Source: Oikopleura dioica
Taxonomy: Eukaryota > Animalia > Chordata
DNA: 64,000 nt
Assembly: GCA_907165135.1 (NCBI GenBank)
Contig: OU015566.1
Coordinates: 8,494,001-8,558,000 of the forward strand
Reading direction: 5' to 3'
Below the pieces are notes generated by a model that worked only from the letters and a program-made list of their open reading frames with translations, did not search any database and was not told the DNA's origin. Within the stretch, counting starts at the first letter, position 1, and each line of letters begins with the position of its first letter. The translations under genes were made by a program, and so were the position numbers. Shown in pieces: positions 3,789-37,704 of the stretch.

Positions 3789-6700
3789 TCACTTTTGGGT
3801 CGTCGTAGATCGCTTTGAATGCGCTAAATCATCAAAATTGAGGACGAGTAATTTGGTCAACTCGGTTCCATTTCGCGATCCAACGGCGCAGACAAGCTTC
3901 GTCTCAGAGGCCTTGATTCTCCAAACAACGCCGCCGGTATTTCTCGTATCCAACGAGACCAAATCGCGAATCCACTCGCCAGTCTCCGCATTCCACAATT
4001 TCACCGTTCCATCATCCGACGACGTGATAATGAACTTGCCACAATATTGGAGGGAAGTAACGGCCGAGTTGTGCTTGTTTTTGTCGTCCAATGTTCTCAC
4101 AAGAAGGCCTTAAATGATCCCATAAGAAACTAAAAGAGCTTCTTAGAGAGTTACCTGTGTCAATGTCCCAAATTTTTACAAATGAATCGGCATTTCCAGA
4201 GACGAGAGTTTTCCCTCTGAAAATAGATATAAACGGCAAGATGTAGTTACGTCTCTTACCGTAGCTCCATGCCACTAGTCAAGCTTTGGTGTCCAACAAG
4301 CGTGTGTAGTAAGGTGCCATTATCAGCATCCCACACCTATGAAATAATCATTAGATTCTGCTTCTACAAGGAGGTTGCGTCTCACCATGATGTTTGTATC
4401 TAACGAACCGCTGACAACATGTTTTCCATCGAATTGAAGTGAATAAACCCGCTGTGTGTGGCCTTGAAGAGTGTGCAAAAGCTTACAATTCGATTTCGGA
4501 TCCCAAATCTATTTTTCAGTTAGCAACAAGACAACTTGTATCTGATTTACCTTTACTGTGTTGTCATACGATCCCGAGACAATTTTCTTGCCATCAAAGC
4601 ATACGCATCTTACCGCAGCAAAATGACCAACAAGAACAGCCTTGCATTTGAGAGTGGTTAGATCCCAGAGGCGCAAGGTATTGTCTCGAGAGCCGGAAAC
4701 GACCTCGTTTCCAGCCAAGGCCATGCATCGAACTGTTGAGCAGTGGCCGTAAAGTGTTTCTATGCATTTGCCGGTCTCGGCGGACCAAACTCGTAGAGTC
4801 CGATCGGTGGAGCCAGAAACGATCCAGTCATCCTTTTTGTCAGTTAATTTTTGCAATCAAAAATAATAAAAGACTCACCTTCATTTCTAGGCACCAAACT
4901 CCGCCCGTGTGTCCAATAAGCGTCGATTGGCATTGTCCGGTTTTTGCGTTCCAGACCTAAAACTGTAGTAACGAATTCCGACCCTACTTGCTTACCTTGA
5001 GTGTACTATCATCGCTTCCAGAAACGATTCTCTGACCATCAAATTGAAGACAAGTGACAACATGGTCATCGTGGCCAACCAATTCTAGCGGCGTCACGTC
5101 TCCTTCTATCCAGACCTTCTCTATGACAGTGTTTTTTTTATATTGCACAAGAATTGGGGACGCTAACTCCTCCGGCCAGAGACATCGTAGAAAGTCCCCG
5201 AATAGCTCAAAATGTAGCTAAGGGTCTACTGCGTGCAGTGAGGGGGTTGAAATTTTCTTGAGCCCACGTGATATTCCGTAATATTACGTAATAGTAGGAA
5301 ATAATGTATTTTTTCAAATTAAGACTATAATGGACATCGTCATTAGTACCATTCGACGTCATTTTTCATCCTCTTTTTTTCTCAAAGGTCATCCGAGGTC
5401 ACGTGACCCCAACTGACCTCAAAAATAAATAAAAGCTATATACAGTGACACATACATCATTTGATCACTTTTCAAAGATCTTTTTATGTTCGAATCGATT
5501 GAGGTCATTTTGGGTCACGTGACCTCGGGCCGTTTCAGCCCCGTTCCTTGATTTTTAAATTTAAGGGCTTGACGGCCCTTCGGGCCGTTTCAGCCCCGTT
5601 CCTTGATTTTTAAATTTAAGGGGCTTGACGGCCCTTCGGGCCGTTTCAGCCCCGTTCCTTGATTTTTAAATTTAAGGGGCTTGACGGCCCTTCGGGCCGT
5701 TTCAGCCCCGTTCCTTGATTTTTAAATTTAAGGGGCTTGACGGCCCTTCGGGCCGTTTCAGCCCCGTTCCTTGATTTTTAAATTTAAGGGGCTTGACGGC
5801 CCTTCGGGCCGTTTCAGCCCCGTTCCTTGATTTTTAAATTTAAGGGGCTTGACGGCCCTTCGGGCCGTTTCAGCCCCGTTCCTTGATTTTAAATTTAAGG
5901 GGCTTGACGGCCCTTCGGGCCGTTTCAGCCCCGTTCCTTGATTTTTAAATTTAAGGGGCTTGACGGCCCTTCGGGCCGTTTCAGCCCCGTTCCTTGATTT
6001 TTAAATTTAAGGGGCTTGACGGCCCTTCGGGCCGTTTCAGCCCCGTTCCTTGATTTTTAAATTTAAGGGGCTTGACGGCCCTTCGGGCCGTTTCAGCCCC
6101 GTTCCTTGATTTTTAAATTTAGGGGCTTGACGGCCCTTCGGGCCGTTTCAGCCCCGTTCCTTGATTTTTAAATTTAAGGGGCTTGACGGCCCTTCGGGCC
6201 GTTTCAGCCCCGTTCCTTGATTTTTAAATTTAAGGGGCTTGACGGCCCTTCGGGCCGTTTCAGCCCCGTTCCTTGATTTTTAAATTTAAGGGGCTTGACG
6301 GCCCTTCGGGCCGTTTCAGCCCCGTTCCTTGATTTTTAAATTTAAGGGGCTTGACGGCCCTTCGGGCCGTTTCAGCCCCGTTCCTTGATTTTTAAATTTA
6401 AGGGCTTGACGGCCCTTCGGGCCGTTTCAGCCCCGTTCCTTGATTTTTAAATTTAAGGGCTTGACGGCCCTTCGGGCCGTTTCAGCCCCGTTCCTTGATT
6501 TTTAAATTTAAGGGCTTGACGGCCCTTCGGGCCGTTTCAGCCCCGTTCCTTGATTTTTAAATTTAAGGGCTTGACGGCCCTTCGGGCCGTTTCAGCCCCG
6601 TTCCTTGATTTTTAAATTTAAGGGGCTTGACGGCCCTTCGGGCCGTTTCAGCCCCGTTCCTTGATTTTTAAATTTAAGGGGCTTGACGGCCCTTCGGGCC

Positions 6701-9700
6701 GTTTCAGCCCCGTTCCTTGATTTTTAAATTTAAGGGGCTTGACGGCCCTTCGGGCCGTTTCAGCCCCGTTCCTTGATTTTTAAATTTAAGGGGCTTGACG
6801 GCCCTTCGGGCCGTTTCAGCCCCGTTCCTTGATTTTAAATTTAAGGGGCTTGACGGCCCTTCGGGCCGTTTCAGCCCCGTTCCTTGATTTTTAAATTTAA
6901 GGGGCTTGACGGCCCTTCGGGCCGTTTCAGCCCCGTTCCTTGATTTTTAAATTTAAGGGCTTGACGGCCCTTCGGGCCGTTTCAGCCCCGTTCCTTGATT
7001 TTTAAATTTAAGGGGCTTGACGGCCCTTCGGGCCGTTTCAGCCCCGTTCCTTGATTTTTAAATTTAAGGGGCTTGACGGCCCTTCGGGCCGTTTCAGCCC
7101 CGTTCCTTGATTTTAAATTTAAGGGCTTGACGGCCCTTCGGGCCGTTTCAGCCCCGTTCCTTGATTTTTAAATTTAAGGGGCTTGACGGCCCTTCGGGCC
7201 GTTTCAGCCCCGTTCCTTGATTTTTAAATTTAAGGGGCTTGACGGCCCTTCGGGCCGTTTCAGCCCCGTTCCTTGATTTTTAAATTTAAGGGGCTTGACG
7301 GCCCTTCGGGCCGTTTCAGCCCCGTTCCTTGATTTTTAAATTTAAGGGGCTTGACGGCCCTTCGGGCCGTTTCAGCCCCGTTCCTTGATTTTTAAATTTA
7401 AGGGCTTGACGGCCCTTCGGGCCGTTTCAGCCCCGTTCCTTGATTTTTAAATTTAAGGGGCTTGACGGCCCTTCGGGCCGTTTCAGCCCCGTTCCTTGAT
7501 TTTTAAATTTAAGGGGCTTGACGGCCCTTCGGGCCGTTTCAGCCCCGTTCCTTGATTTTTAAATTTAAGGGCTTGACGGCCCTTCGGGCCGTTTCAGCCC
7601 CGTTCCTTGATTTTTAAATTTAAGGGCTTGACGGCCCTTCGGGCCGTTTCAGCCCCGTTCCTTGATTTTTAAATTTAAGGGGCTTGACGGCCCTTCGGGC
7701 CGTTTCAGCCCCGTTCCTTGATTTTTAAATTTAAGGGGCTTGACGGCCCTTCGGGCCGTTTCAGCCCCGTTCCTTGATTTTTAAATTTAAGGGGCTTGAC
7801 GGCCCTTCGGGCCGTTTCAGCCCCGTTCCTTGATTTTTAAATTTAAGGGGCTTGACATAAGCGTGGGACTCTGAGGTGATCAATCTCAGTTATGTCCCCA
7901 ACCCCACCCTCACCCATATGGTATAAAAATATAAATTATTCAAGTTTTTTGCTTACTTATGGTTCCAAATTTAATTTTCCAAAATTTTATTTTGAAAATT
8001 TTTTTATTTTTTTCTTGATTATGACATCAGAAATATGTCCACAAAAATAAACTAACCTTCTTCTTTCTAGACTCATGAATTCTTTCTTCTTTTCTTCTTC
8101 CATGAGAAACTCTCACGGAGGTCCTCCGGGTCCTCCACCCGAAATTCAGAGAAGTCCGACTTTGGCAGCCGATTTCGGCATGATAATGCCATCTCTAAAA
8201 TTTTTAACCCCCTTACTGCACAATTTGGACCCTTGGCTACATTTTCCGCCCTAAAGCTTTACAGTAGCATTACTGTGGCCGGAGGAGTTAGCGTCCCCAA
8301 TAAGCACCTTTTTGTGCAATATAAAAACACTGTCTATTCGTTTCTTTCTCATTATTGTCTTCTTCCACGGGGAATGAATGTTCTGACCAGTGATTTCTGG
8401 AGCTCTCGTTTTTGCCCAGCTCTTGTATTGCTTCAGCACAGGCGGAGAGCATTCTAGGCGTGGTAGGTCATATTTTTAATTTTAAAAGGCAAGTGATAGG
8501 TGAACGCGGACTCTGGAGATTTCGACATACTAATTGACTCCTAATTAATCTCTTTATATGCTCTTTGGTGGTCCTCTCTGATACATTTCCTATCGCTCAT
8601 TTGCGCAAAATAAATATTCTCAAAGTCGACCATCGCTTACCTTTTACTTTTTCGTCTTGGCATTTTTGACGCCAAATTGTGTTGTCGTCAGCGAGTTGCC
8701 GCCAAGTACGGCATGTTTGCGCCGCAGAAACAAGGTCTTTTGGCTCTAGATTCGAGAGCACATGAAGGGCAAGCTCGGGCGGAAGGAGGGAGATGAAATC
8801 TCGTTGGAAGCGCGGTTCGATTACTGAAAACATGATCGAGGAAACATTCTCTATTTCTTGACATCTAAAATAGCCGGTCTCTCTTATATATATGATTATA
8901 AGCCAATTACCAAAAGTTCATATAATATATAAGTACTCATATAATTATACTGATTAAGTTATAAAGAGAACTTAAATTTTTGGTTCATCGGAGCTTGAAC
9001 TTACCATCTCGCATAAAACGAATATTCTTAGGAGAAGAAACGTCGATCAACCTTTCAAGGGCGATTTGTTGTTCCTCTTCGGAAAAAGTGCTGTAAGCCT
9101 GAAGCCAACTGTCGATCCGATCCATCTTGGCTTCTGGCTTCTTTGCCGCCCAGTCCAAAGTCTTTTTGGGAGGGCATTTAGGTTTTCTACGAAGAAATGG
9201 CTTATTTTTCTCAAAGAATTAGCATGGTACTTACAGCTTTGGTCTTGAATGTTGCTTTTGCTTCGCTCATTTTCATTTTCCTGCGGCGAACTCGTCTGCT
9301 CGAGTAAAGGCTTCTTGGCATCAGGCAATTTGGGTGGCGAGTCGCGAGAAAAGGCAAGCTTCCTCTTTCGGAAACTGTCAGGGGTTGTTGATACACCGGA
9401 AGAAATGCTCTTTGCATTGGGGGTGATGTTATTTTTTGGAGAAGAAGAAAGCGACGCTCTTTTCCGCGTCGACATTGTCGAGGATGAGGTATTCATTGGC
9501 TCTGCTGGTGGCGGGGATGCTTTACTAGTGCTGGGGATGTCGTGGGGATGTTTGGGTGATGTGGAGGCCTCATTTTTCGGCGATAGGTCGAGATTTCCAG
9601 ACGATGAGCTGCTCCCTTGACGCAGCGAAGAAAGTCCGAATGATTCTAGTCTGCTGCTCACTCTCTCCTTCATTTTTGAAAGGGGTGATCTAAAAATAGT

Positions 9701-20036: not shown

Positions 20037-23000
20037 TCAGATAAGAACTTTTCCTTCGGTAATTTCTGGGATGTAAAACTTCATCATATTCTCCACTCCA
20101 TGCTTCAACGTAACAACACTTGATGGACAGGTAGCGCAGGCCCCAATAAGTGAAAGCTGCAAAACTCCTAAATACAGAAATGAGTAACGATAGTTTCCGT
20201 AATAGGTCGAACTCACCAGTATCCGGGTCGAATGACACGAAGGAGATATCGCCACCATCTTCCATAACAGTTGGACGGATTCTAGTGTCAAGAAGTTCCT
20301 TTATCATCGCAACGACTTCATCTGTAAGGCGGGTTTTTCATGATAGCCCTATGACGAACTACTTTGTTGAATAAGCTCGCAGACTTCGACTGCGCGATAC
20401 TTCTGCTCGCCAGAAATTCCTAGTTTCCACCTATAGAGAAGGCGGAATTTACCCTCGATTAACGTCACAGCTTTATATTTCGGAGCATTGGGGCTCAGAA
20501 ATGCCCGAATAAGGTCATTTCAAGAGCACGACGCATAGATGTTCGCCAGTCTCGATAGAGAAACCATTCTAGCTCGGGTCAACGGAAAATCATAAATTAG
20601 GAACACTTTAAAATTTCCTAAAAAGGCTGACTCTAAATGTGACCAATCCCACTCATCATAGATTCTGATGCTGCTCATGTGATACTGGTATCTTTATTCA
20701 TTAAAAATTCCTGCTCTTAGAAAAAGGATATTCGGGTGAAAGAACGTCAGAGACCTCTGAAAAGATGGATTACGTCTTTGAAATAACTCGTGAAATTGTA
20801 AAACCAAAAATTCTATTCAATAAGAGAGTCATCTAAAATTCTTTTAACTAAAGCAAATCTTCCAGTTTATGCAGGTAAAAAACTCAGTTTCACACTCTTG
20901 GCTTCGGCGGGTACTTCCGGCAAAAGGGCCATAAATCTAATTACTTTTCTGACCTCTATTAGCAGATAATTTTATGCTTTATCAGTTATCAATTTCAAAG
21001 AGCCTTTTAACATGCGCATAAGAACTTTTTCAGACAAGCCGCTTTTGACGTTTTTCTAGCAGCTGACCTTTCCCACCACTTTCAAGAACAATATTTATGA
21101 GTTCGTTTGGTACGAAATTGTGCATATTCAAGCTACTTGTGAAACAAACATTTTTTTCTGATGGAACTTTAATCTTCATGGCAGATTGACAGAATCCCAA
21201 GTTCTTTACCCACAGCTTTTTGTCACCAGAAAGGGCAATGAAGAACATTATTACGGCCCTTACGATTATGAGAATCGATTTAACTTTTGAAAACGGAACA
21301 ATAAGGCTCCCTGGAAAACGGAACTCTGAAAATTATCAATCAAATTTGAAAATGTATACGCGCGTACATAAGATAAAAGAGCGCCGACCCTTATTAAAGG
21401 CTTCAATTGCTATTTAATTTAAATGAGGAGAATTGGAGTCGACCTGGCGGATAGCTGCCAATTTATCTGTCATGAAGTCATCACTATCGAAAATTCGGAA
21501 TAACAAAAAGTAAGTTCTCTATTTTAGAATGTTTTGAAACCTTCATGAAAATAAAGACAAAGAAGATTGTTTCTGCTCTCAATAAAAACGCAATAATAAT
21601 CAATATTTTTCATCAAAATCATATGCATCTCGGTCATAACTAATCCCAAAGACGATAAGAACTTCTCGATAAGAATTAACCTAAGCAGTTATTATTGAGC
21701 AGGTAAACAGAGCCAATATCGACTTCATTTCATAAGGTTAACTAGGCAAGATGGTCTTAATATCGACAGGTAATAAGCACACAGTAACTAATCGTATGTC
21801 CAGTAAATAATCGCAATGGTCTGGCGCTCGGGCGCAGCTGATCCGGGGAGCGCCCTCCCGTGAGCGCGCCTTTGTCGACGACGCTAAAAATACGCGACGA
21901 GTGCGAAAAAATATTCACTTCGTTGTATAAAACACACTCGCTACAAACTCGAAACAGTATATTTTCACTTATTTTCAAGAAAACAAAGATATACCGAAAA
22001 TGAACAAGATTGATCGAGAGGCTCTCCTGAGAAGACTTTCCGAAGAAGACACCGATTTACAACTCGTAGTCGGAGCTGACGACCTCAAATCTATCGAGCG
22101 CGATATCGACGACTTTTTCGCAAACGAAAAGATGGCTCAGATGATCGTGACGAGCCCCGGAAGACTCCTGACAGGCGCAATCAGATTCGGTTTAGGTAAG
22201 AATTTTGACACGTTTTTATGGGCAAAAAATTTACGAGAAAATTTTAGTGGTCGCACGCGATCGTGGCATGTCCGCATCGATTTCCTTCGATGATCAAACT
22301 CCGACTTTGCTAGTGGAAAAGCTTCGCGTTTAAAAAATCCGAAGTCCCCAGGGGGACTTCTGTACATATTTATCTTCCAACACATTGAGCTACTGTATAT
22401 TTAAACCTGTAAATAAAGAACAATGACGTTTAAAAAGAGCACGTTTTGTATTCATCCACCCGGCAGAAAAAAACTGGTAAAACACTTGTAATTCGCGCCT
22501 AAATAGGTTACTCTAGCAACAAAGTTGAAGAAATATTCAAGTGGTAGACAACTGGATATTAATTTAATTTGAAAATTCAGTAATAAGAGCTTATAAAACG
22601 GTCATAATTTGAAAAATGTCATTTTGAAATTGGAATAGAAATTATACCGCAATTCACCTGTAACTACTTGAACAGATCAATATATAAATGTCATTTACTT
22701 TTATGTGTATGCCACTCCCTATAAATGTAAAAATCATCAAGGTCGTTTCATTAAAAATTGCATAAAAGCAACCTTGAGAAGCTTCGTTCTTGAAAAATTT
22801 CGCGCAATAAAACCGGAAAAATTAAGATATTCATAATATTTGTTAAGGTTCATAAAACTACTTGTGTAAATATAAGAAGGAGAATGGCTTGTATAATCAC
22901 ATGGGAAATGAGAATACGAATTTCCGACCACGGAATTGTTGATTCGGACAAATATCAATTGGCCCGGCGGCAAACAATTGACTGATTCTGAGGCGATTTC

Positions 23001-24293
23001 CGACGATGACCGTGAAAGCCGTCAAAAGCACTGGAGTATTTGAATTCTGTTGCGAAATGAAACAGATGTTCCGAACTGTCACGAGGTCGAGTCAGATCCT
23101 GACTACATCTGTCATTACCTTCAAATGCAATAAACACGAAAGCATGTGATAAGGGTAAACTCCGGTACAACCCGTAACAGAATGTACAACGGTCAGAGGT
23201 ATGTACAAACGAGATCACCATAAATCAGTAGGAAATAAATGGGCCCTCGCCCGCGGCCAACTCATCTGAGTAGGACATCAAAGCCAGAGCTTGATTTATG
23301 AAGCCTCAGGAGAGTTTGCCCACTCCCTTGGGTAACGTTTATTTTCGGTAATCAAGTCGGTTTTTGCGCGGCGTATTTCCCCTTAATTTCCCACTATCGA
23401 TTTCGACCGCATATATATTGAAAAAGATGAGCTGGTTTTGCTTTGGGGGATTTTAGATGCAGACTGATGCGATTATAGCTGCTCGGTAGATAAAAACAAA
23501 AATTATGGAAGAAAATGATAATTCAAAATTCTTAATTTGTTATGAAGGAAATTCCACCTCGTTTGTAATAAATTTTCATTTTGGCCTTCATTGACGTCAC
23601 GGAGTTTCTCTAATTTTCGGTTGAAATAAAAGTTTAACCTTGATTCATTGTCGTATTCTGACATAGACGCGTTTTACGTGTGCTGCGTTAAAAGCCAAAA
23701 TAATGAAAAACCCGAGCATGACATCATCATCATAAATAATAGTATCCTGATTAGGAAGTGCGTCTTCATTGATAATTGGCAAGTTGGAGTCGAAGAAATC
23801 GGTCAAAACGGCGAACAATTCGGCCTTGAGAACGGGCCAATCGTCCGTTTCATCGTGGCGGATGATTGTCACAAAATCGGGACCAAGAAAGCAGCCTAAA
23901 AGAGCGGATATTCAAATTTGTTCCAGTCTCTCATTATTCGAGATCTGAGCGTCATTAGTGTTAATCGCAGTTTGATAAGGTCTATTTTCTCAATTTTACG
24001 CACTTCGGAATCTCTTTCGTACAATTTTTCATCCCTTCCGAAGCAGTAAATTGTTATTCCTGATCACTATCGTGTTTTTCGGAAACCTTACCTTTGACAC
24101 CGTCGACGGCAAAAATCCTCTTCGCGAGGGGGCTTTTGTACGCCTCTCGAATATCTGGAAAGTCACAGGTGGAGCCGGGTCCGAGAACGTCGCGGCCTGG
24201 GACGAACTTGAGGGCATTTGGATTAGGTGTTGTTTCGGTAGTGATGAACAGGTTCCTGAGCCGGGGTAGGATAGCTCGCGAGGCTTTTAACAT
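20037..24293 (-). CDS. NFU1: Mitochondrial Fe-S cluster scaffold NFU1, interrupted by a 3.4 kb element; extreme 3' end unresolved
   Basis: [60 protein letters not shown] and [29 protein letters not shown] (CxxC motif). Confidence 0.93.
20323..23723. mobile_element. TGT...ACA element (3401 bp) with short imperfect TIRs and 5-bp TSD TCATC; Ginger-like or LTR-derived, unclassified
   Basis: Left end TGTAAGGCGGGTTTTTCATG versus right end reverse complement TGTCATGCTCGGGTTTTTCATT. TCATC at 20318-20322 and 23724-23728. Removal restores NFU1 ...[12 protein letters not shown]... Confidence 0.8.
22000..23210 (+). pseudogene. Decayed, intron-containing coding remnant carried inside the NFU1 element
   Basis: ORF 22000-22293 ([17 protein letters not shown]...) has a GTAAG donor near 22196 and a GC-rich upstream stretch. 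Further protein-like but stop-interrupted segments at ~22940-23200. Confidence 0.35.
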
Positions 24294-35379: not shown

Positions 35380-37704
35380 TCATTTTCTAATTTTGTACAA
35401 AACAATACTCCTGGAAGCATCATCTAGCGGAGTCGGGCTATGAAAAAAGCTCTCTACGTGAAAGTATCGAAGCTCTTGAAGAGTACTTCGAAGCTTTGAT
35501 TCATGCTTGTCAAAAAAGGCGAGATAATCGTATGATTTTTGGGATAAATCTTTGTAGACAAAGTCTTCTGGGTCTTCGTGAAACTTATCCACGTCCGTTT
35601 TGAAGGGTTCGTTTTTGCGGCCTTGCGAGACCGGAGGTGGACATTGAAGTTGAAAAAGTTCTGAAGTAGAAAATGTAAAACTCTAGCTGAAGCGTTAGAC
35701 GAACCGAGATGATGTCCTTTCAAGCAAAATCGACTGTACTCTCCGGGCATAACATGGCACGGGCCGTAAAATCGAATACTATCGCCTTCATTGAAGCATA
35801 ATTCAACCCTAAGATAGCTAGGTGTAATGGTAGAAAAATGAACCACATGATCGCCTTTTTAAAGCTTCAATTATGATGCAGATTTAGAATCGCTAGGTCG
35901 TGGCGATCATTTTGATACCAAGATCATCGGAATCGGACTAGATTTTCGACCGAGAATGACCATCTGAAGTCCCAAAATGAGCGCTAGAAATTTTCGAGCG
36001 CCCGGAAAGGGATGAATACTCCATCCAGTCATTTAACTCATAGTCTCACTTTGTAGAGCAGGTTTTATTCTCCCAGAATCACTTCACAGAAGTTGTGAAC
36101 AGGGACTCTAGTACGGACGAGCGCCGAAAGAAGCCGAAAAAATGGGGGAAAATCAATGCCAAATTTGGTTTCTGAGAAGTCGCACTAACGATTTCGCCTT
36201 GATTTTGCACGTTTTTGGGGGGCCTCTTTCGGCGCTGGTCCTTACTAGAGTCCCTGTTCACAATTTCTGTGAAGTGATTCTGGGAGAATAAAACCTGCTC
36301 TACAAAGTGAGACTATGTGTTAAATGACTGGATGGAGTATTCATCCCTTTCCGGGCGCTCGAAAATTTCTAGCGCTCATTTTGGGACTTCCGATGCTCAT
36401 TTTCGGTCGAAAATTTAGTCCGATTCCGATGATCTTGGTATCAAAATGATCGCCACGACCTAGCGATTCTAAATCTGCATCATAATTGAAGTTTTAAAAA
36501 GGCGATCATGTGGTCCATTTTTCTACCATTACACCTAAAGATAGCGCGCTAGATCTCCTGGCCCTCGTTGGTGAACAATTGATAAATATATTCCAATAAT
36601 CAAATTCAGCCCAACGTAGATTTTCTTCAACCATTCATTTTGAAAAACACGAGCAGCGGGTTTCGCCCCAAACAGAGTCAGAAGAGGCAAGGCGGACATG
36701 ATGAAGCGGAATTCCTTGTGCTCGGATCCGATCTCCAAGATGAACCAGTTAAAAATCAATGTCATCAAAAGTCCCTTTTCCAGCTTCGATAATCTCTCAG
36801 AGGAAAACAATCGAACAGCGGCGAAGACACAGGAAAAGCCACAGCTGATGGGCAGTCCTTGAACAAGATACCATCCGAAAAAGCCATTTCTTCCGTAAAA
36901 AACTGCGATATTATCGAACACATTTACTTTTAAAAAGTTGAAGGGGGTAATCGTATACTCGCCAAACCAAAGTGAGTCGATTCCGATGCAGAGAGCGAAG
37001 ATGAAAACTGTCATTTTCACGCTTTTAGAAAGGAGTCCCACGCGATCTTCAGTATGAAAAAGATGAAGGAGAAATAGAGGAATGTAGAAAGTAGCGCTTG
37101 TCGGACGCATAATGATGCTCAGAGCTGCTGGGTAAAGATAACTTGTTGAAGATGATTTGAGATGGTCCTCTGAGAAATAGGAGAGGGTGAAGGTGGAAAG
37201 AGCTAATTCCATGGAATTAGAAATAGGCCTGCTGGATGCATATAGCTGGTGGAACGATAGAGTCATGAGCAAAAAGGCCCCTTCCGTGATCGCGGAAGAA
37301 TTGAAGCTTCTATCGATGAATTTGAGAAATGAAATTTCCGAAATTCCAGATGCCAGAGCGACGTAAAGTCGCATGATTGTATGAAGATTGACAAAACGAT
37401 AAAACCCAATCGAATGCAGCAGCTTTCCCAGCATTAGAATCGGCATTAGCCAGATTGGAGATCGAATCGGCGGTGATTTCCATTCCCATGTGAGAGAAGT
37501 TTCGTTCAATATAAAATTGTGGACGACATCGGTCGATTGATAAAACTCGTCAGGAACGTACGCTGTCTGCTGAAGCAACGCCGAGAATATTTTCAAAAGA
37601 AGGATTTGCGCTGCATAAGTTGACATAACGCGATTTTCGCCAGCCTTGGAACGGTGGAAACGGACACGAGTGATTTTTTCGGCTTTTAGCGCGTCAGATT
37701 TCAT
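35380..37704 (-). CDS. PIGB: GPI mannosyltransferase 3, interrupted by a hAT-like MITE in the coding sequence
   Basis: TAYVPDEFYQS, LTWEW..PIRS, RPTSA, NFLKVNV, YG...WYL.QGLP, HKEFRF and HQRG motifs. The C-terminal part (RFYGPCHVMP) resumes after the MITE. Confidence 0.9.
35819..36537. mobile_element. hAT-like MITE/foldback, 719 bp, ~310 bp near-perfect inverted arms, 8-bp TSD AAGATAGC
   Basis: TAGGTGTAATGGTAGAAAAATG... (35819) and ...CATTTTTCTACCATTACACCTA (36537). AAGATAGC at 35811-35818 and 36538-36545. An 8-bp TSD is typical of hAT. Confidence 0.93.

Follow-up and report, generated by a model that had tools for sequence, protein, structure and literature searches.

A 3.2-kb terminal inverted repeat transposon inside a coding exon of Oikopleura dioica FBXW7, a candidate young intron

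The origin of new introns remains a matter of debate, and few animals show ongoing intron gain; Oikopleura dioica is one of them. Introns born by transposon insertion in this animal were reportedly described by Denoeud et al. in 2010 (as cited in PMC3443670 and PMC4122922). Intron gains of this kind are listed for Oikopleura (PMC3443670, Table 1), and about 11 to 12% of the introns handled by the O. dioica spliceosome are non-GT-AG, mostly GA-AG (11% of the annotated introns in OKI2018_I69; PMC8008620). GA-AG introns are the main non-canonical class of the species (PMC4122922, PMC7072748); they are threefold enriched among its new introns, and its spliceosome has been called permissive yet precise (PMC4122922). 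The other systems close to this one are the introners, introns made from DNA transposons in Micromonas and Aureococcus (Huff et al. 2016, as cited in PMC13326754), and the introner-like elements of fungi (PMC3609843, PMC4457414). Here, we describe a terminal inverted repeat (TIR) transposon of 3,210 bp within coding exon 4 of FBXW7, in a 64,000-nt window of the Okinawan O. dioica genome (G000:C4:8,494,001-8,558,000). All coordinates without a prefix are those of this window, and the element and its host gene are read on the minus strand. The locus poses the question of whether a weakly signalled 3.2-kb insertion can become an intron at once, with GT-AG or GA-AG ends.

The stretch from 5125 to 8334 is confirmed as a non-autonomous cut-and-paste TIR transposon inside an isoleucine codon of FBXW7 coding exon 4. 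On the minus strand, the junctions read CGA ATA, GACAGTGTTT ... AAACACTGTC, ATA GAG AAG GTC TGG. The insertion and the two parts of the exon that it separates are laid out as follows, with L065 and L066 standing for two relatives that carry an empty site.

5125 to 8334, minus strand: non-autonomous TIR DNA transposon, 3,210 bp, defined by its TIRs, its satellite, its family copies and the empty site in L065 and L066
8335 to 8337, minus strand: upstream ATA target-site duplication, the Ile codon that closes exon 4a; L065 has a single ATT Ile codon here
5122 to 5124, minus strand: downstream ATA target-site duplication, from the direct sequence
8273 to 8334, minus strand: 5' TIR in gene orientation, beginning GACAGTGTTT, from inverted-repeat pairs and the 11 terminal bases
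5125 to 5181, minus strand: 3' TIR, ending AAACACTGTC, from inverted-repeat pairs and the terminal pattern
5525 to 7856, strand unassigned: 56-bp satellite, 41.9 copies at 99% identity, common to other family copies and to a family of miniature inverted-repeat transposable elements (MITEs) with 8-bp duplications
8335 to 8453, minus strand: upstream part of exon 4 (4a), ending ...RKKRI, 87.5% amino acid identity to L065
4996 to 5121, minus strand: downstream part of exon 4 (4b), from EKVWIEGD... to ...STLK, the start of the first WD40 blade, 100% identity to L065

The TIRs match perfectly over 11 terminal bases and then in arms of 19 nt (95%) and 29 nt (97%), for a total of about 57 to 62 nt with two small indels, and a weaker similarity continues inward. 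The satellite makes up 2,332 bp, or 73%, of the element. The longest open frame inside the element has at most 62 amino acids, the element holds no transposase gene, and a search of Rfam gave no match anywhere in it. A homologous-protein search with the 62-amino-acid frame that spans from exon 4a into the element likewise gave no candidate. Translation reading through from exon 4a would meet an in-frame stop at 8253-8251 after 27 element-derived codons. Two inverted repeats lie within every 56-bp unit of the satellite, ACGGCCC-4 nt-GGGCCGT and AGCCCC-about 22 nt-GGGGCT, from which a transcript across the array is predicted to form about 84 hairpins.

A sequence-only reading of this DNA had already proposed a TIR element with a 3-bp target-site duplication inside an FBXW7 coding exon, and the TIRs, the perfect ATA duplication and the empty site in two lineages bear it out. 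It had also described both junctions correctly, with the two ATA copies, GT at 8330-8329, GA at 8334-8333, and AG at 5122-5121 and 5120-5119. Its limits of exon 4, given as 8456 and 4997, are corrected here to a start at 8453 and an end at 4996.

The host gene was identified by homology searches run exon by exon.

3789 to 9673, minus strand: FBXW7 orthologue in 10 exons, from its F-box and WD40 domains, a match to FBXW7 in PDB, dN/dS and its single copy

The nine ordinary introns of this gene are all GT-AG, 39 to 187 nt long and intact. A domain search found an F-box-like domain in exon 3 (E 9e-19) and WD40 repeats in the exons from 4b on. The last exon matched FBXW7 in PDB with an E value of 9e-64, compared with only 4e-23 for FBXW1A, and exon 4b matched FBXW7 residues 102-142 of 2ovp_B, its best natural PDB match. 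When we searched the genome (64,281,565 bases in 19 contigs), the DNA of exons 3 to 4a matched only its own locus, and the next-best WD40 exon genome-wide was 47% identical. The host gene is a single-copy FBXW7 orthologue, the only one in the assembly. Against protein representatives, the 94-amino-acid WD40 exon returned giant multi-WD40 proteins, with no Oikopleura protein among the matches listed.

A scan of metagenome contigs supplied the two relatives with an empty site. L065 (Ga0115008_10005393) is syntenic with the window over 10 kb at about 72 to 77% DNA identity, with 96% amino acid identity in the WD40 exon, which places it within the O. dioica complex as a deeply diverged lineage. 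The second larvacean relative, L066 (Ga0256838_1023329), is more distant. In L065, exon 4 runs on continuously as ...AAA CGC ATT GAG AAA GTT TGG (R-I-E-K-V-W), and in L066 it continuously encodes K-I-E-L-S-W, each with one Ile codon at the site. Because L065 and L066 keep exon 4 whole, the element is derived and arrived in the Okinawan O. dioica lineage. A dated, lineage-specific insertion in an essential, single-copy and strongly conserved gene would offer a clean natural experiment, and it is the empty sites in sister lineages that would make it so. The ratio of nonsynonymous to synonymous substitution rates (dN/dS) between Okinawan FBXW7 and L065 was 0.036, with synonymous sites near saturation, and the exon 4b protein was 100% identical at a proportion of synonymous differences (pS) of 0.54. 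Measured between the two lineages, this dN/dS shows long-term constraint on FBXW7 and is silent on constraint after the insertion.

With moderate confidence, we read the element as a young, lineage-specific intron that would be removed at near-terminal ends by the permissive spliceosome of O. dioica. The transposon with GACAGTGTTT ends entered the ATA Ile codon of FBXW7 exon 4 with a 3-bp duplication, in the Okinawan lineage after its split from the lineages of L065 and L066. The U2 spliceosome would then treat it as a new intron of 3.2 kb and excise it from the pre-mRNA, leaving FBXW7 usable. The candidate splice sites are the following.

8329 to 8330, minus strand: candidate GT donor, context ACA/GTGTTT, weak (score -2.2, rank 40 of 101 GT sites in the span)
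8333 to 8334, minus strand: candidate GA donor, the first two bases of the element, context ATA/GACAGT (score -0.6)
5119 to 5122, minus strand: overlapping candidate AG acceptors, 5122-5121 for the GT donor and 5120-5119 for the GA donor (ranks 3 and 16 of 200 AG sites)

Removal from GT8330 to AG5121 predicts R-I-D-K-K-V-W, one residue more than the uninterrupted exon, and removal from GA8334 to AG5119 predicts R-I-K-V-W, one residue fewer. These two pairs are the only near-exact in-frame solutions, and the exact R-I-E-K-V-W is unattainable with any G*-AG pair. Of the two, we slightly prefer GA8334-AG5119 as the more plausible, because GACAGT retains the AGT at +4 to +6 of the local GTAAGT consensus and GTGTTT does not. 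The sequence-only reading had worked out both products correctly (RIDKKVW and RIKVW), and its interpretation overall is partly supported. It had further spoken of classic introner geometry, which does not apply here given that no G*-AG pair can excise the element and its duplication exactly, and it had put the canonical GT-AG pair first, a choice that the low score and rank of GT8330 do not favour. Moreover, with donors taken from the exon up to the first in-frame stop and acceptors from the open stretch that leads into exon 4b, we counted 222 in-frame, stop-free G*-AG pairs, so an in-frame pair is expected by chance.

The donors were scored with a matrix built from the nine real FBXW7 donors, which gave these donors leave-one-out scores of 3.5 to 11.1 and which penalises A at +2. 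The corresponding acceptor matrix from the nine introns was nearly uninformative, with leave-one-out scores of -6.7 to 3.9, and we therefore draw no conclusion from acceptor scores.

We lean towards splicing because exon-borne elements are frequent, and elements this frequent cannot all be null alleles. In the same window, the open frames of two further conserved genes are each broken by a transposon, which brings the conserved genes with an exon-borne transposon to at least three, FBXW7 included.

35819 to 36537: hAT MITE with the 8-bp duplication AAGATAGC, in a 320-amino-acid frame whose label, PIGB, comes from the sequence-only reading alone
About 20323 to 23723: element in NFU1; the empty site reads ...IIYD up to the insertion and then 14 residues

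The 56-bp satellite, together with about 130 bp beside it (5525-7993; L006:1241-2071; L007, L019, L002 and others), also occurs in a commoner MITE family, which has different ends (TGGGGTTGCGC...) and 8-bp duplications. The satellite module seems, from this shared sequence, to have passed between the two families. In the commoner one, three of seven clean copies lie in open frames of 171 to 345 amino acids.

Across the genome, the terminal pattern of the FBXW7 element occurred 14 times (about 8 elements), compared with 0 times for a reversed control. Seven copies are complete, ranging from 374 bp to 3.2 kb, and all seven have a 3-bp duplication (ATA, AAA, AAG, AAA, ACT, AGT/ACT and AAA). Identity among all copies is 72 to 99%, and four copies that carry the same satellite form a young subfamily at 95 to 99% identity. 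In its unique parts, the FBXW7 copy shares 73 to 79% identity with this subfamily, and one short copy matches it at 88% over 128 bp. For five of the seven complete copies, reconstruction of the empty site gives an uninterrupted open frame, in unrelated genes, and these exon-borne copies have the orientation of the host gene in four cases and the opposite one in the fifth. Besides FBXW7, the hosts are as follows.

C4:11,205,086-11,205,459: family copy in an amino acid transporter gene (Aa_trans, PF01490, E 3e-18)
C1:14,001,613-14,002,756: family copy in a Sec1-like gene (weak match, E 1.5e-4)
C5:6,965,041-6,967,749: family copy in a FAM221-like gene (PF14753 in all matches)
Family copy in one further frame, of 156 amino acids, without a family match

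The homologous-protein search with the FAM221-like host frame returned only metagenome proteins, at 71% identity or less. In the larger family copies, the longest open frames are translated satellite and not transposase. The sequence-only reading had looked to a genome-wide TIR search for family members, other exonic insertions and an autonomous partner; the first two were found, and no partner was found genome-wide in searches for Harbinger, CACTA and RAG1-like transposase families. Its expectation that the TIR would recur with a 3-bp duplication holds in six more complete copies.

The family shares its 3-bp duplication, its TIRs and its short and long non-autonomous copies with PIF/Harbinger MITEs of the Tourist type and with CACTA/EnSpm elements, and neither placement is supported. 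The duplications are not TWA, with neither TAA nor TTA among them, and PF13359 (DDE_Tnp_4) had no genome match, with a positive control in one control genome, which speaks against PIF/Harbinger. The 5' end is GACAGTG and not the CACTA or CACTG of CACTA/EnSpm; PF02992 (Transposase_21) had no genome match, a weak negative since its control was positive nowhere. A Transib or RAG-like origin is improbable given the duplication of 3 bp instead of 5 bp, and PF12940 had no match, with a control that was positive nowhere. The element ends (8300-8334 and 5125-5160; also L024:1501-1545) consist of GACAGTG, 12 or 15 T-rich bases, and then ACAAAAAGG or ACAAAAAAC. GACAGTG agrees with CACAGTG at six of seven positions, and this layout of heptamer, spacer and A-rich nonamer-like block resembles a V(D)J recombination signal. 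The likeness is probably a coincidence, because the duplication is 3 bp and not 5 bp and no RAG1-like gene was found.

Several observations weigh against the reading of the element as a young intron. Both GT8330 and GA8334 score below every real FBXW7 donor, and the strongest donor in the element, AAG/GTTAGT at 8056, lies beyond the in-frame stop. Both predicted products alter the spacing in a conserved I-[ED]-x-x-W motif, and 3.2 kb is an unusual intron length beside a median of 49 nt. The GA donors reported for O. dioica have AG upstream and A at +3 (PMC7072748), a pattern from which the TA/GAC context of GA8334 departs. The family offers no common rule either. An intron from GT at +4 to the first AG would be in frame in two of the five exon-borne copies (FBXW7 and Sec1), and one from GA at +1 to AG in two of the five as well (FBXW7 and, exactly, the copy on C2 with the duplication AAG). 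Both offsets are thus in frame at chance level, and a family-wide splice rule, with fixed donor and acceptor offsets in frame for all exon-borne copies, was rejected. Because there are no constant in-frame offsets, the family does not have the fixed build of an introner. We also tried and rejected an acceptor inside the element, 38 nt from its 3' end: it is in frame in two copies, and in a third copy the site lies at 39 nt, out of frame.

The C2 copy (L062:1501-4276; G000:C2:3,722,052-3,724,827) is a case of its own. With its duplication AAG, the stretch from GA to AAG forms an exact GA-AG "intron", and taking it out would give back the sequence as it was before the insertion. AG stands immediately upstream of its GA, and the insertion site may coincide with an existing exon-intron boundary (CAAG/GTGATA).

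A further point against the favoured reading is that the same copy of FBXW7 bears a possible frameshift in exon 1.

9235 to 9250, minus strand: one base fewer than in L065 (2950-2975), close to the end of exon 1

The Okinawan sequence reads ACATT-CAAGAC where L065 reads ACATTCCAAGAC, 12 bases before a conserved GTAAGT donor. If the conserved donor (9234) is joined to the conserved acceptor (exon 2 from 9186), exons 1 and 2 meet out of frame and their junction reads T+AA, a stop. The gap may have arisen in the assembly, as an indel, or may be a genuine frameshift that affects the long isoform. A weak GT at 9230, four bases further on, could rescue the exon 1 frame, and a conserved Met in exon 2 could initiate a shorter FBXW7 protein.

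The alternative that survives best, and one that is quite possible, is that the element marks a loss-of-function allele: a recent insertion on one chromosome copy of a heterozygous male, kept by haplotype merging while the intact copy sustained the animal, with no useful splicing of the element. The OKI2018_I69 assembly came from one male with about 3.6% heterozygosity and was reduced from 99 to 64 Mbp with HaploMerger2 into "reference" and "allelic" sets, so that the reference is a haplotype mosaic of one highly heterozygous animal (PMC8008620). The four nearly identical copies indicate that the family was active fairly recently, and the ATA duplication and the terminal 11 bases of the FBXW7 element are pristine. 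The weak splice signals, a best donor that follows the in-frame stop, the lack of an in-frame geometry in the family and the possible second lesion in exon 1 all agree with a null allele. Roughly 40% of the O. dioica genome is coding. The shares of copies in open frames (five of seven in this family, three of seven in the commoner MITE family) are near this coding share, as unselected insertions would give. However, exon-borne transposons, with at least three conserved genes affected in this window, are too frequent for this account. The FBXW7 copy has no close relative in the assembly, and its distance from the young subfamily means that it does not look like the product of a fresh burst. The assembly also contains no alternative haplotig with an empty site. 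If the allele is null, the lesson is that, in very heterozygous animals, a haplotype-merged reference carries broken alleles which resemble exotic gene structures.

Splicing through other cryptic sites, so that the protein retains part of the element or lacks part of the exon, is improbable in our view. Among the 222 local pairs, GT8307-AG5119 and GT8387-AG5121 scored best, with donors of 3.5 and 5.2 and acceptors of 2.7 to 4.7; the former would swap one residue for nine element-derived ones, and the latter would delete 19 residues including the conserved HSPWK stretch. Those donors are still under nearly all real FBXW7 donors, however, both products would disturb a linker conserved between lineages, and the scores come from a matrix built on nine introns only, with a near-uninformative acceptor half. 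A long-read misassembly that placed the element in the exon is hardly credible even for a Nanopore-based, haplotype-merged assembly (PMC8008620), because complete TIRs at both ends, together with a perfect 3-bp duplication of a codon that the relatives carry once, are what real transposition leaves behind, and the same geometry recurs in six other copies.

A bolder version of the young-intron reading is that the GACAGTG-ended family is a working animal "introner" whose copies, up to multi-kilobase in size and with a hairpin-forming satellite, land in coding exons at random. The spliceosome would then use the element's own GA as the 5' splice site together with whatever AG follows, and each insertion would at once add an intron and slightly change the protein, with FBXW7 caught just after birth. 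We consider this version unlikely. Like the introners, the family consists of non-autonomous TIR elements with a short target duplication and has several copies in the coding sequence of unrelated genes. Introners differ in having hundreds of near-identical copies, whereas we found about 8 elements at 72 to 99% identity. They also bring a splice site at a constant position, which allows element and duplication to be removed exactly; the present family has no fixed geometry, and exact GA-AG removal is possible only in the copy at C2:3.72 Mb, whose duplication is AAG by happenstance.

The young-intron reading of FBXW7 can also be set beside the larvacean Fritillaria borealis, whose non-canonical introns Henriet et al. 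(2019) reportedly linked to MITEs. According to PMC13326754 (reporting Henriet et al. 2019), F. borealis is a larvacean without a U12 spliceosome in which the U2 spliceosome removes non-GT-AG introns. That system differs, in the same account, by its duplicated U2AF subunits and by having fewer than 10% GT-AG introns, whereas O. dioica keeps the 3' AG and mostly the 5' GT.

A close comparison is with the transposon-insertion introns of O. dioica itself, as described in PMC3443670 (Table 1) and PMC4122922. Those introns and the FBXW7 insertion share the species complex, a DNA transposon in a conserved coding exon and relatives that are intron-free at the site, and the candidate ends at FBXW7 include the GA-AG type that is enriched among the new introns of this animal. 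The difference lies in size and content: O. dioica introns are typically about 49 nt long, whereas the FBXW7 element is 3.2 kb, consists mostly of satellite and is only predicted to be spliced. Taken as an intron, the FBXW7 insertion is another case of the reported O. dioica route of intron gain and not a new mechanism.

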